From Blastocystis sp. Blastoise (Eukaryota > Protista > Bigyra: Opalinata): 64,000 bases of DNA. A model generated the notes under the pieces. That model ran no database searches, was not told the origin of the DNA, and saw only the letters and a program-made list of their open reading frames with translations. The stretch covers positions 1,984,001-2,048,000 of the forward strand of contig JBBPEB010000014.1 in assembly GCA_039096225.1 (NCBI GenBank), read 5' to 3'. Every line of letters starts with the position of its first letter. Positions within the stretch are counted from its first letter, which is position 1. Position numbers and translations under genes: made by a program. Positions 57,136 through 62,562 of this stretch are shown here, piece after piece.

Positions 57136-59623
57136 GGAACATATTTTATCTGATTAATCATGTATAAATATTCATGGTAATTTTAGAGTCATCAGCTCAA
57201 TGACAATAGACACCATCATAAGTGATAGATTTACTGATATGGAATGATTGGATTATTTTGTTCTTTTAGCAAATGATATCTATTTAATTGATATGACGTG
57301 AATGATGTATGTTGTATATGTCAATTGCATCATTAGATATTTACATAAAAAGCACCAATAGAATAAAATGATGACGTCAGTATATATTGTTTTTTTAGTA
57401 TTTACTGATTTGATCAGTGGAAACAGTGGAATTCTATGTAATTTTTAAATAGCTATATCTCTGGATATAAGCAATATTTTGTCTCAGTTAAAAAAAGATA
57501 ATTCGTTTCAAAAGAAACTCTAGCAGGGGACAAAATTTCAAAGCCCCACTGTCAGTCCTTGGACTGTATGTGTGTACATATCCTCTTATATTATATATAT
57601 ATATATAGTATTACACCTGTATGTATGATATATCATGGTCTCAAGTACCCCTGGCCTTCAAGCATACTACAAAATAACAGCAGTATGTATTTTATTAATT
57701 ACTTATATTTTATATATATTCTAATAGGATATGCTTCTTATCTACTATATATAGATGACTGAAGTTAATAATAGCAATTATGTTTATGTTTCTATTCTTT
57801 GTTTTTGTATTATACTATTGATGTTCCTTCTTGTTTTGTTCTTAACTGAGAGTTATTATTATTATATAGTCACAACAAGTTATATCATAAAGATCAGTCT
57901 TTAATGGCTTAAATATGGATTTACTTGAATGTAGAGTGTTATACAATTAACAAAACAATATATATATAATAGAAATTGATATTAATTAGAAATAGATGCA
58001 TTAAATCTTTGCTGATACTTTCTTTGCGCTTCCTTATGTCTTTCAGCTTTGTTGCGATGCATAAGTTCAATCTTATCATAGTGACACTGAAGAACTTTGT
58101 ACTCCTCTGATCGTAAAGGTGAATCCATTATAGACAGATTTGTCAAATGGGTTAGGGCTTTATTAAAGGAATCAAAACGTTCCTCAGCAAGGCCAAAGGG
58201 TTCTCGAGCTGCTTTAAATACTCTAGTCATCCTTCCAAAATAGTTTTCGATAAGAATTCTATACTTATTAAACGTTATATCATTAACGCCATTAGGAAGT
58301 GATAGGAGTTCAGGATCCGATTCAGAATGGTATCCTTTATCAGCTAATATATAAACAGAACTTATAGTATCTCCTATGTTAGTGAGCATTTCATTTAATC
58401 CAGCCATTATTGCGTGCTTATTCAATCTAAACATTGATATATCACTGTTTGATGCAGGAAGAGAAGGAGAAACATATATACACAGACCCTCATGATTGAT
58501 AATATATTGAGCTGACATTCCAGGGCTATGAAATTTGTGGGAAAAAAACTTACGACGTTGGGCAAATGAAGACGATACAGCAGCGATACGTTGATGACGT
58601 CCATCGATTATAAAGCGTGAAGATTGTCCTTGCTCTGATAGGCGCTGCTTTTCTGCTTCGCTAATCTTAGATGAAAGCTTTGGACAACCTAATGTTGTAC
58701 AAAACGGTACATAGCAAGCTGCTATGGCATCTATTCCCTTTAAGAGGGCAGTTCTAACGATATTACGTTTTTCATGAACCTTAGTAGCCAATTCGCCAAT
58801 AGTACAACATCTTCTTATATAAACCAAAGCCAAAAAAATTGACTTATTTTGAGACAACGAACCTTTTCTGTTTCCTTTAAAGTTAAACATTGCTAGAAAA
58901 ATAGTATAATAAGATAAATATAACATTATTGAACAATAAATACCATCTTGTATTATCATTTCGCATCTTGAACGAGAAAAACCCAGCAATTGTTCACAAG
59001 AAGAGTCACTTAAGAGTCTGTGAAATGATTCAGGGTAGAGTGATTGCTCATCTGGATCATTAACAGTTACATCATGATCTAAGCAATAGTCCTCCACTTC
59101 CCTATCTATTTCCTCTTCTATGTCACAAGAAAACGAATCAATCAAACTCATTTTTATTGTAAATATAATTTTTTTTTGTAAAAAGATATTGTTTTAATGT
59201 ATTGTAAGACGTATTAGTTTTTTAATTAGTGCAAATAAATACATAATATACATACGTAATGACTAAAAGAGAAACATTCATACTTTATCAATAGAAATAG
59301 TACGCGTAATTAGAAAAGTACAATACGTATGTGATACGTACAATCAAATAAAAAATGACACAGATCAATTTGTGATAGACGTTATCAGTCGCATATGATA
59401 ATTTTATTTTTTTTAGTAAGCAAATGATATGTATAATACACACTGATCGAATATTCTTAGATGTTAATAGTTTGATATCATATGATCCACTATTATCGTA
59501 ATTATTTCTTATTTTTCGCAATGATATGATAAATAATTCTGATAATTTAAATATAGTCTGACTCGATATTCTTGTTTCTGATTTAATCTGAATATATCTG
59601 ATTAATCAGTTGAATATGATTCC
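57136..59623. mobile_element. PIF/Harbinger element, putative boundaries
   Basis: Imperfect TIRs GGAACATATTTTATCTGATTAATCA (left) and GGAATCATATTCAACTGATTAATCA (right, reverse complement), each flanked by TAA (57133-57135, 59624-59626), the typical Harbinger TSD. Confidence 0.55.
57982..59151 (-). CDS. PIF/Harbinger (DDE_Tnp_4-like) transposase
   Basis: Motifs FIIDGRHQRI, FFSHKFHSPGMSAQ..GLCIYVS..ASNSDISMF, ILADKGY and RILIENYFGRM..FK. Probable 51-nt in-frame intron at 58893-58943. Confidence 0.85.
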   Translation of the reverse strand: MSLIDSFSCDIEEEIDREVEDYCLDHDVTVNDPDEQSLYPESFHRLLSDSSCEQLLGFSRSRCEMIIQDGIYCSIMLYLSYYTIFLAMFNFKGNRKGSLSQNKSIFLALVYIRRCCTIGELATKVHEKRNIVRTALLKGIDAIAACYVPFCTTLGCPKLSSKISEAEKQRLSEQGQSSRFIIDGRHQRIAAVSSSFAQRRKFFSHKFHSPGMSAQYIINHEGLCIYVSPSLPASNSDISMFRLNKHAIMAGLNEMLTNIGDTISSVYILADKGYHSESDPELLSLPNGVNDITFNKYRILIENYFGRMTRVFKAAREPFGLAEERFDSFNKALTHLTNLSIMDSPLRSEEYKVLQCHYDKIELMHRNKAERHKEAQRKYQQRFNASISN

Positions 59624-61092
59624 TAAGCTAATTTGTGATAAACATATTTTTTTTTATAAAATAATTTGGGGTATTCTTATTTGAACAACTAGATATCATT
59701 TATTTTTGAGATTTTTAAAAACAGTATGGAATTATTCAATTATAAAAAAAAAAAAAACATGATGTCAAAAAAAATATATAAAATTATTAATAGTAATTTG
59801 TATATATTTTTATATACTCTAAATTTTTTATAATATACACAATTCGTTTTGTTATTTTAGATTAAAAAATTTTGATAAGCCACTTATATGTGTCAAAAGA
59901 TCACAAGTGTAATATAGTAGTATAAATAAACATATATGAATTGATTATGATAATATCATATATTTGAAGTATTTGTGTTTTTATGGATGATATAGGGTTT
60001 CGTTGTCGTTGGTCAAAGTGGTTTATAAGAATAGAATCATATATTATTGTTCTTGATATCATTTCATACTTTCAATATGGATAAAAAGATTTTTTTTTTC
60101 AGTTTCATTAGAGAAGAAGAATGATGTTTTGTATCATAGAGAATAATGTTTGAGTTACCAAATATATGTATAGATTATTATATTATATATAGACATTTAA
60201 TTAACAAAAAGTTCTAAAGTCTTTTAAGAGAATCAATTGAAAATGGTTATAAGAATACTCTAGGAATATATAATTAATATATAATAAATTAACATTCTAT
60301 TTTATAGAAGAACTAACAAATTAAAGAAATGATTGAGATGTCTTTTTTCTCATGTTATCTTTAAACAATGGCATATTACTTTATTTGAATATAAGGTGTA
60401 AGATTCAACTTGATATATAATAGAAATTTAATTTAATCAATTAAAGGAATGATAGACTCGAGTGTTTTAAGTGAATTTAGTTTAATTGGCCACAATATTA
60501 TTCTTTAAGTATTTTTTAATTCCATATAGTTGATTTATATATAGATAAACTTGATTTAGTGGATCAAATGATGATTTCATGAAGATTATAAGAATTATGT
60601 ACATTGATATACTTTAAAGAAAGCATTTATTCATTCATTTATGCTTTAATATCATACATATATCCATATCAAAACAGAATTACACATCAATTAAGCAACA
60701 TCAGTTGTGACTGAAGAAATTAAGTTGTTTATATTCGTCAAAAACGTATTATAGATTTCACTATAAAAATCTCTACAAGATTCTCTATTTAATATTTTCT
60801 ATATATACGAAAGAAGCTTCTATTCTTGATAAATGAAATGAAATAGCTTTTGAATGATTTGAATAATTACGGTTTTTAATGAATTGGAAGGCGAGAGTTT
60901 TTATTGGGAAATTCTTGAAGAGAAATGGGTTGATTGGTTTCGATTCAGCTCATTTTCGAGAGTCAGCTTTACTTTTGTTTATCCATTTTCATTTTTTATA
61001 AATGATGTTTTGTTCATATTTTAATTTGATTTGATTCAAATATAAATAATATTAATTAATTCGATAATATTTTTGATTAAGAATTCAATATA

Positions 61093-61662
61093 ATGATGCA
61101 AGTATATAGAAGTGTTCCTGTAATGCAGCTTGCTGCTACTCATGCTATTCGTGCTTCTCCTCTTTTAATACAGAAGAGAACAATGATTCTTGGATTTGCA
61201 ATTAAATCAGCTATTGGTATGTATTTCTCATTTACAAAGATAATTTCTATTCTATTATTGAATATATAATGATTTATTTTATATAGATTTAACTGCAATT
61301 TCTACAAGTGCTGCTGCTGTTCGTAGAATAACTGGCTTTGAGTATTTTTTTCTAACTTATTATTTTTTTTATAAATATTATATTATTATAGTTTTAAACC
61401 TTATGCTATGAATATAAAAGATGAAAAGATGCGTAACTTCTCATTAGGATATTTATTTTATGGTGAAAAATGGGCTGATTTCTTTGTAAATCAATGGGAA
61501 CGTTGTACTTTAAAATGTAAAAATGAGAATAGAGAGAAATACGAAAAGTATCAAAGACAATATGATAGCAAAAAAAACCAATATTCTGATGAATTCCAAA
61601 GATATAAAGATGCTAAAAATTATGATTCCAGCAAACATATGTATCCTGATAAATATGAATAA
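61093..61662 (+). CDS. Mitofissin (Atg44/Mdi1; DUF1748)-like protein, 149 aa, with a presequence-like N-terminus and a charged C-terminal tail
   Basis: Exons 61093-61216, 61287-61341 and 61392-61662 (450 nt, GT-AG introns). The core MILGFAIKSAIDLTAISTSAAAVRRITGFD..IKDEKMRNFSLGYLFYGEKWADFFV fits the DUF1748 pattern G..h...D..LvST..Agi+R.TG...mRn....YL..GE...D. Confidence 0.75.
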
Positions 61663-62562
61663 ATTATATTCATTAATTAATTGATTTATTCTATTATTAT
61701 TATTCTTTTTTTGGGATTTTTTATGATATATATTATGATTTTTTAATATATATATATTGTGATTTTTTTAGATATATATTATGGTTTTTTAATATATATT
61801 TCTTTCTATTTATGTTGTGCATTCTACATGTATTTAATAACTTTATAAAATTGTATGAGTATATTTTTTATTATTAAATAGGTTTTATTGTTTATTAGTT
61901 TTGTTCAATTATATAAACCTTTTTATAATACTTGATTATTATCAAAAATACTTTTCGCTTATATTAATGAAATCACTAGGCTGTTAATAAATAAATTTTG
62001 TTTTATATTTTGAAAAGAGATAGAATCACATAAATGTGTTGATAAAATATTTTTATACATTTCTTACATCCTTTATTTCCTTGTATTTGACTTGTGTCCC
62101 CAGTAGTAATAAAAATATGCTCATATTTTGTATCGAATAGAAACATTTTGTATATTTCAAAAATTATTCATTTAATACTTCTGATTGAATTTCAAGAGTT
62201 AGTTTTCTGACCATTTTGTTTCCTATGTGTTTGTTTTAACAAATATATTACTGAAATTGATTGATAGTACTGTGATTATCAATTCAAGTGAAATATTAAT
62301 AAATAGAATTAAACCAATAGAAACACTATTAATTGAAACAAACAATATAAGGGTATATATATTTTGATTTGCTCGTATTCTAAGAAAAGTTATAGGTAAT
62401 AGAAAAGAAAGTTGAGATATATTAATCATGTTATGACCTATTTATCAGTTTCTCGAGCTATGTCTATTGTCAACCATTATCAAAAATAAAAATTCATGAA
62501 TTCAGAGTGTAAATCATTATTCTACATTTGTTTTCATTTGATTTCATCAAGAGGTTTGTGTG

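Follow-up and report, generated by a model that had tools for sequence, protein, structure and literature searches.

Mitofissins were reportedly defined in yeasts in 2023, and the locus studied here raises the question of whether Blastocystis, a stramenopile retaining mitochondrion-related organelles, encodes a member of this family and, if so, by which route such a protein would reach the membrane on which it acts. The window, i.e., the whole stretch of 64,000 nucleotides that was analyzed (G000:C8:1984001-2048000), belongs to a 33.3 Mb assembly of 34 contigs and is AT-rich, with GC values between 0.17 and 0.28. The source isolate, Blastocystis sp. "Blastoise", comes from a Russian tortoise (PMC10690189). 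At positions 61093-61662, an initial annotation of the window had proposed a hidden, three-exon gene for a non-fungal mitofissin carrying a mitochondrial presequence-like extension.

Gene structure and the intronless duplicate

As read from the sequence, the plus strand at 61093-61662 contains three exons with a summed length of 450 nt, corresponding to 149 codons and a stop. The features of the locus and its surroundings are the following (C2 denotes a second locus of the same genome):

57137..59623: insertion of 2.49 kb, absent from the collinear C2 locus, with TAAG at both junctions
57982..59151, minus strand: 389-aa ORF contained in this insertion, probably a transposase
60841..61092, plus strand: proximal upstream block of 252 nt, common to the C2 copy with 3 mismatches; presumed 5' UTR and promoter-proximal DNA
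61093..61216, plus strand: exon 1 (124 nt; codons 1-41 and the first base of codon 42), with the start ATG-ATG, the 30-codon N-extension and the beginning of mitofissin helix 1
61093..61182, plus strand: N-extension, residues 1-30, acid-free with 4 K/R, QKRT then M31; candidate cleavable organelle presequence
61189..61500, plus strand: coding span of the mitofissin domain (residues 33-96), split by both introns; PF08520 match obtained with the identical intronless ORF
61217..61286, plus strand: intron 1 (70 nt, GTATGT...TATAG, phase 1), missing precisely in the C2 copy
61287..61341, plus strand: exon 2 (55 nt), completing helix 1 and encoding the conserved loop motif VRRITGF
61342..61391, plus strand: intron 2 (50 nt, GTATTT...TATAG, phase 2), missing precisely in the C2 copy
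61392..61662, plus strand: exon 3 (271 nt), with mitofissin helix 2, the tail and the TAA stop at 61660-61662
61504..61659, plus strand: C-terminal tail, residues 98-149, of K/E/D/Y-rich composition
61663..61826, plus strand: 3' flank, common to the C2 copy, with small indels and an AT-rich repeat in 3 versus 1 copies
62560..64054: MFS-transporter gene following the mitofissin gene

A plain list of open reading frames shows the locus only as a 58-aa ORF (61093-61269, running from exon 1 into intron 1) and an 84-aa ORF (61408-61662). Nevertheless, the splice pattern is more than a prediction, because the C2 locus carries an uninterrupted 149-aa ORF (G000:C2:703383-703832, corresponding to L001:1405-1854) that equals the three exons (124, 55, and 271 nt) with 0 mismatches. 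Positions 1-124, 125-179, and 180-450 of this ORF represent exons 1, 2, and 3, and both introns are gone to the base, so that the proposed 149-aa product and its two introns were borne out by a natural copy of the spliced reading frame. The gene can be called hidden only with regard to the plain ORF list, since an identical 149-aa protein (P0001), occurring on two contigs, is deposited at NCBI as hypothetical protein WA158_002497 with a precomputed PF08520 assignment.

In total, three mitofissin loci were found in the genome (C8, being the window locus, C2, and C29), each of them followed by a paralogous MFS-transporter gene (window 62560-64054, L003:2925-3347, and L013:3090-3732). The MFS genes are old duplicates, with DNA identities of 68% (C8-C2), 70% (C8-C29), and 67% (C2-C29). 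Locus comparison by blastn with default scoring revealed a different picture upstream: ahead of the gene, C8 and C2 are collinear for 2 kb or more at 91-96% identity, and the genome contains this block in two copies only; the identity rises to 99% in the proximal 252 nt and 100% in the coding sequence. This high identity ends about 165 nt past the stop codon, near window position 61826. The difference between the MFS genes (67-70%) and the mitofissin segments (99-100%) thus indicates recent gene conversion or re-duplication ending near 61826.

Introns 1 and 2 occupy the same positions and phases in the C29 paralogue and in the homologue of Blastocystis ST3, the latter featuring a third intron besides the two common ones. 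The occurrence of both introns in ST3 indicates that they are ancestral. The absence of both from C2 at first recalls a retrocopy bounded at -252/+165 relative to the coding sequence, and their precise removal is indeed what a retrogene would display. However, no poly(A) tract was found at the C2 copy, the homology reaches beyond the transcript, at least 2 kb upstream, the apparent 5' edge is an insertion, an MFS gene comes next at C2 as at the other two loci, and C8 and C2 are collinear DNA duplicates; the retrocopy was rejected on these grounds. We read C2 as a DNA-level duplicate or gene-conversion partner of the window locus that, judging from the alignments, later lost both ancestral introns precisely. 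Recombination with reverse-transcribed spliced mRNA, the standard explanation of precise intron loss, would account for this event. The C8/C2 pair therefore represents a clean and recent case of precise double intron loss in which the flanks are ordinary DNA-level duplicates, within a genus with shrinking introns.

The insertion at the C2 locus (G000:C2:700083-703130; L023:3084-6131) is 3,048 nt long, is flanked by a 10-nt direct duplication (AAATAGCTTT), and lies 252 nt 5' of the ATG. It carries a 257-aa ORF resembling a hAT dimerization domain by eye, and may cut the C2 mitofissin copy off from its promoter.

The C29 paralogue (L013:1628-2230; G000:C29:520995-521597) has the same exon structure as the window gene and a 7-codon insertion in the tail. 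With about 80% protein identity and an overall dN/dS of 0.16, it represents the older paralogue. Its intron 1 ends in TG rather than AG, with no in-frame alternative acceptor, and the GenBank model of C29 (P0002, 101 aa) starts within exon 2. The TG acceptor could reflect recent damage to the splice site or an error in the sequence.

Family membership and relatives within Blastocystis

To assign the protein to a family, the intronless ORF (L001:1405-1851) or the database protein P0001 was used for full-length searches and fold prediction, while the window copy was searched exon by exon. The PF08520 (Mitofissin) profile matched the intronless ORF with 41.1 bits (E 1.5e-10; residues 33-96 to model positions 1-62 of 69), clearly above the Pfam cut-off of 27 bits, as the initial annotation had anticipated for such a profile check. 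A six-frame scan of the genome with the same profile yielded 42.3 bits, the C2 match being stronger than that of the window locus. Within the window, exon 2 reached 19.3 bits (model 9-28) and exon 3 reached 15.4 bits (model 28-62), whereas exon 1 by itself gave no Pfam match.

The nearest known system is Atg44/Mdi1 (S. cerevisiae YIL156W-B and S. pombe SPAC26A3.14c; PF08520, PDB 7ydo), which is characterized by residence in the intermembrane space, cardiolipin-dependent binding to membranes, and membrane fission (assay methods in PMC10520655). A profile built from five Blastocystis homologues matched chain 7ydo_A among the PDB sequences (E 1.1e-5, 28.7 bits), with profile positions 39-96 aligned to chain residues 18-73 and the alignment covering the AG(I/V)RR..G loop and the YL.FGE motif. 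The profile was required, since single-sequence phmmer reached merely E 0.21 for 7ydo. The AG(I/V)RR(S/I)(S/T)G loop and YL.FGE motifs are thus common to the Blastocystis protein and the crystallized S. pombe Atg44, with an identity of only about 28%.

Fold comparison pointed in the same direction, but its evidence is weak, because the alignment behind the AlphaFold2 model was shallow and confidence in the model is low (mean pLDDT 58.8; helices 10-20, 23-57, 62-66, and 71-135). In a Foldseek search with this low-confidence model, 7ydo_A was the top hit and the sole standout for the putative two-helix core (E 0.055, prob 1.00, TM by target 0.66, rmsd 3.4 over 61 columns). Structure matches from the ESM-Atlas consisted of HisKA-type helical hairpins and were dismissed as meaningless for a two-helix protein, and the nearest ESM-Atlas clusters were DUF1748 families of Ascomycota (top) and Chlorophyta. 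Altogether, mitofissin membership is well supported by sequence and weakly by the predicted fold, and that the locus is a real gene of this family can hardly be doubted.

The protein differs from its fungal counterparts in several respects. Mitofissins are typically microproteins of about 70-100 aa without a targeting extension, small size being a typical rather than a defining trait of the family, whereas the Blastocystis protein adds a 30-aa N-extension and a 52-aa tail and, at 149 aa, is twofold larger than Atg44 (about 73 aa). Furthermore, it belongs to a stramenopile whose mitochondrion-related organelle is anaerobic, unlike the fungi in which Atg44 is found. The initial description as a non-fungal mitofissin was therefore correct, but its implicit view of the family as purely fungal was too narrow, considering the Chlorophyta DUF1748 cluster nearby and the members already reported from algae and some plants in addition to fungi (PMC10473966). 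Among the papers searched, none treats Blastocystis together with mitofissin, Atg44, or Mdi1. What appears to be new is the combination of a presequence-like head and a constrained tail on a known family, kept across a genus with reduced mitochondria. The protein would be a first candidate for an internal division factor of a mitochondrion-related organelle, in a very common eukaryote of the human gut.

To determine the distribution of the protein, 1.84 billion representative sequences were searched with phmmer, resulting in four matches (P0002, P0003, P0004, and P0005). P0002 is the C29 paralogue from the same genome, P0003 (158 aa) originates from the Logan run SRR24541401, and P0005 (108 aa) from the Blastocystis ST3 strains NMH and DL. 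The fourth match, P0004, is a shrimp Ig-repeat protein aligned in six short stretches and was treated as spurious. This exhaustive HMMER search returned Blastocystis-like proteins and the spurious P0004 only; it linked no fungal or algal member and provided no phylogenetic placement. When the full protein or its domain served as the query of a word search, nothing beyond the paralogues of this genome was found; with a profile as the query, P0012 and the fragments P0013 to P0016 were recovered from assemblies of gut metagenomes. As far as sequence comparison goes, conservation of the protein spans both the tortoise clade and human-associated Blastocystis subtypes, two groups sharing about 40% amino-acid identity genome-wide (PMC10690189).

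These data also bear on a possible fungal origin. A fungal contaminant or a very recent fungal transfer into the isolate would fit a family best known from fungi and the Ascomycota cluster topping the Atlas results. This explanation is most improbable, however, since the gene resides in megabase contigs with the 23% GC of the host and possesses host-type, short, AT-rich introns, occurs at three syntenic paralogous loci, and shares both intron positions, including their phases, with homologues in human-associated ST3; moreover, all its significant matches in the set of 1.84 billion representatives are Blastocystis-like. One conceivable origin is an ancient transfer into the stem lineage of Blastocystis.

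Several minor observations were made on the relatives. L020:844-1320 and L022:65-637 are uninterrupted homologous ORFs, and the close relatives P0013, P0014, and P0015 run into introns at the conserved sites; the L020 and L022 contigs may have been assembled from transcripts or may represent additional copies that lost their introns. Just 5' of the ATG in L022, at positions 1-54, an internal piece of the same gene is repeated (encoding VCADKIVNFFQRNVSEK), representing either a tandem copy or an assembly artefact. P0012 reads 32 codons beyond the stop of P0003, which recalls the genomic stop codons missing in human-associated Blastocystis subtypes (PMC10690189).

The N-terminal extension as a candidate presequence

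Whether the 30 codons ahead of the domain are translated decides whether the protein has an unusual head at all. Translation could begin at M31 (MILGF...), which stands two residues ahead of position 1 of the Pfam model, leaving an ordinary mitofissin without presequence and an in-frame leader upstream; in ST3 reference genomes, moreover, GTG takes the place of the extension's Met and the annotated start lies downstream. A start at M31 nevertheless seems rather improbable in view of the coding signature of the segment. The upstream frame is open and shows a coding-like GC content of 0.39, as compared to 0.24 in the 250 nt further upstream. The C29 paralogue retains ATG-ATG and all 30 extension codons without indels, with four conservative replacements and a dN/dS of 0.26. 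Extensions with a start Met are also present in P0003, P0012, P0015, and P0016, and in the independent pair L020 versus L022, the 47-codon extension shows a dN/dS of 0.18 at a near-saturated dS of 0.93. Finally, the acid-free composition is improbable by chance, and the GenBank model, taken from an annotation made with RNA sequencing, uses the upstream ATG. The extension is thus very probably translated.

The initial annotation had described it as devoid of acidic residues and as ending like an R-2 cleavage site, and both statements proved accurate and turned out to apply to the other Blastocystis homologues as well. Mitochondrial presequences of the cleavable type comprise 15-60 N-terminal residues, carry a net positive charge, lack acidic residues, and are rich in S/T/A/L/R. 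The window protein has an extension of 30 aa with 0 D/E and 4 K/R ending in QKRT|M; in the five other homologues, extensions of 13-47 aa are likewise acid-free and basic, giving 0 D/E and 2-6 K/R for all six (6/6). A stretch of 30 aa would lack acidic residues by chance with a probability of 0.01, and one of 41-47 aa with a probability of about 0.001. Furthermore, the extension ends with QKR(T/N) followed by M, F, or L immediately before the domain in 6/6 homologues, the junctions being KRT|M here, KRT|F in P0003, P0012, and P0015, and KRN|L in P0005 and P0016. An arginine at -2 combined with a hydrophobic residue at +1 represents the classical context of the processing peptidase. An ARASP motif is also common to the extensions of the Blastocystis homologues. 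Amphipathicity is moderate (maximum hydrophobic moment 0.48 in an 11-residue window), and the helix modelled at residues 10-20 has pLDDT values <50. M16 peptidase loci are present in the genome, as are a single S26 peptidase, a dynamin-family gene (Dynamin_N), and ATG8.

The selection values of the two pairs and the conserved composition uphold the earlier proposal of a presequence-like and coding segment, and composition and junction motif together suggest, with a probability of roughly 65%, that the extension is a cleavable organelle-import presequence.

The ST3 lineage deserves separate mention. In strain NMH (GCA_039096215.1; L021:2917-3003), the extension has GTG in place of its initial Met codon, and the annotated start codon, an ATG, is found 28 codons further downstream; the intervening stretch has remained open in frame and reads ALFVASSSVLPSLAFQAARASPRIIQ. 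In the metagenomic P0016, near-identical to ST3, ATG is present upstream and the downstream Met is absent. Either a natural start-codon shift or non-AUG initiation would explain the ST3 start. Given the GTG and the downstream annotated start, the long extension may be dispensable in that lineage.

The constrained tail and the proposed site of action

The tail (residues 98-149) comprises 13 K+R, 10 D+E, and 8 Y residues and is the most constrained part of the protein, with a dN/dS of 0.06 in comparison to C29; conservation and purifying selection were observed for all three parts of the protein. The model presents the tail as a continuation of helix 2 (helix 71-135, pLDDT 63-79). The Blastocystis homologues combine their acid-free N-extensions of 13-47 aa with charged, Tyr-rich tails of 30-50 aa, and Atg44 has neither.

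Core and tail invite comparison with Mfi2 (Mco12), the outer-membrane mitofissin of budding yeast, which likewise consists of an Atg44-like core and an additional C-terminal region that Atg44 does not possess (PMC12936173). By analogy, the extension could be translated without being a cleaved matrix-type presequence, and the protein could be located outside the organelle, as is Mfi2, or be anchored. The tail would then block import, as was proposed for the tail of Mfi2 (PMC12936173), and the N-extension would serve as a membrane-targeting or regulatory segment; the strong constraint on the Blastocystis tail would suit such a role. As compared by description only, however, Mfi2 occurs in some yeasts only, lacks an N-terminal extension, requires just its first helix for localization, and has a tail reported to be disordered (PMC12936173). 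The Blastocystis tail, by contrast, is modelled as helical, the extension has the composition of a presequence with R at -2 and a hydrophobic residue at +1, and Pfam places the protein in PF08520. Both a location outside the organelle and a tail that blocks import therefore appear unlikely.

Following the preferred reading of the extension as a presequence, we infer the following course of events. Within the mitochondrion-related organelle, the processing peptidase would cut after R29-T30, placing R29 at -2 and the hydrophobic M31 at +1, so that the mature protein would start at M31, matching the start of fungal mitofissins. By homology, the two-helix core (residues 31-97) would bind organelle membranes via its amphipathic helices and aid severing at division, with the strongly constrained, Tyr/Lys/Glu-rich and presumably helical tail as the third part of the protein.

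Given import, a matrix-facing location and one in the intermembrane space are about equally likely. A plain presequence delivers by default to the matrix. Cytochrome b2, Mgm1, and Smac/DIABLO, in turn, are presequence-dependent proteins of the intermembrane space with bipartite signals. Like these, the Blastocystis protein has a positive N-terminal signal directly followed by a hydrophobic helix, which would permit stop-transfer. Unlike in these proteins, however, K38 and D42 lie within the helix, the segment after the putative cut site is only weakly hydrophobic (Kyte-Doolittle maximum of 1.27 over 19 residues), and a second cleavage motif, as present in bipartite signals, was not identified in the Blastocystis protein. 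In view of the low hydrophobicity and the two charged residues, stop-transfer to the intermembrane space is possible, but not evident.

Delivery to the matrix face via the TIM23 route, with the inner membrane being cut or destabilized from inside and the Tyr-rich tail acting as a lineage-specific adaptor, can be put forward only as a speculative scenario. In that case, the inner membrane would be severed from a side for which, to our knowledge, there is no precedent in the family, i.e., in a new topology for mitofissins. In yeast, Atg44 has no presequence and nevertheless enters the intermembrane space (PMC10403340). A mitofissin may thus enter the reduced mitochondrion of Blastocystis by a route unlike that of yeast, as the initial annotation had suggested along with an action from the matrix side, and the Blastocystis form offers a natural experiment on the import route and on the side of the membrane where mitofissins act.

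The tail also contains a C98-x3-C102 motif (CTLKC, window 61504-61518) that is identical in C8, C2, and C29 and unconserved in other subtypes. Substrates of Mia40 contain a twin motif, and a lone C-x3-C does not qualify. The initial annotation had additionally noted a K/E/Y/D-rich tail with a duplicated octapeptide. The composition and both octapeptides, YDSKKNQY (117-124) and YDSSKHMY (137-144), are present as described, but a true duplication is unsupported, because only 5/8 residues match and the third-position Ser is encoded by AGC in one case and by TCC in the other. The tails of the homologues differ in sequence, yet are similarly charged and Tyr-rich, with Y110 and Y113 being invariant in the alignment (A5).
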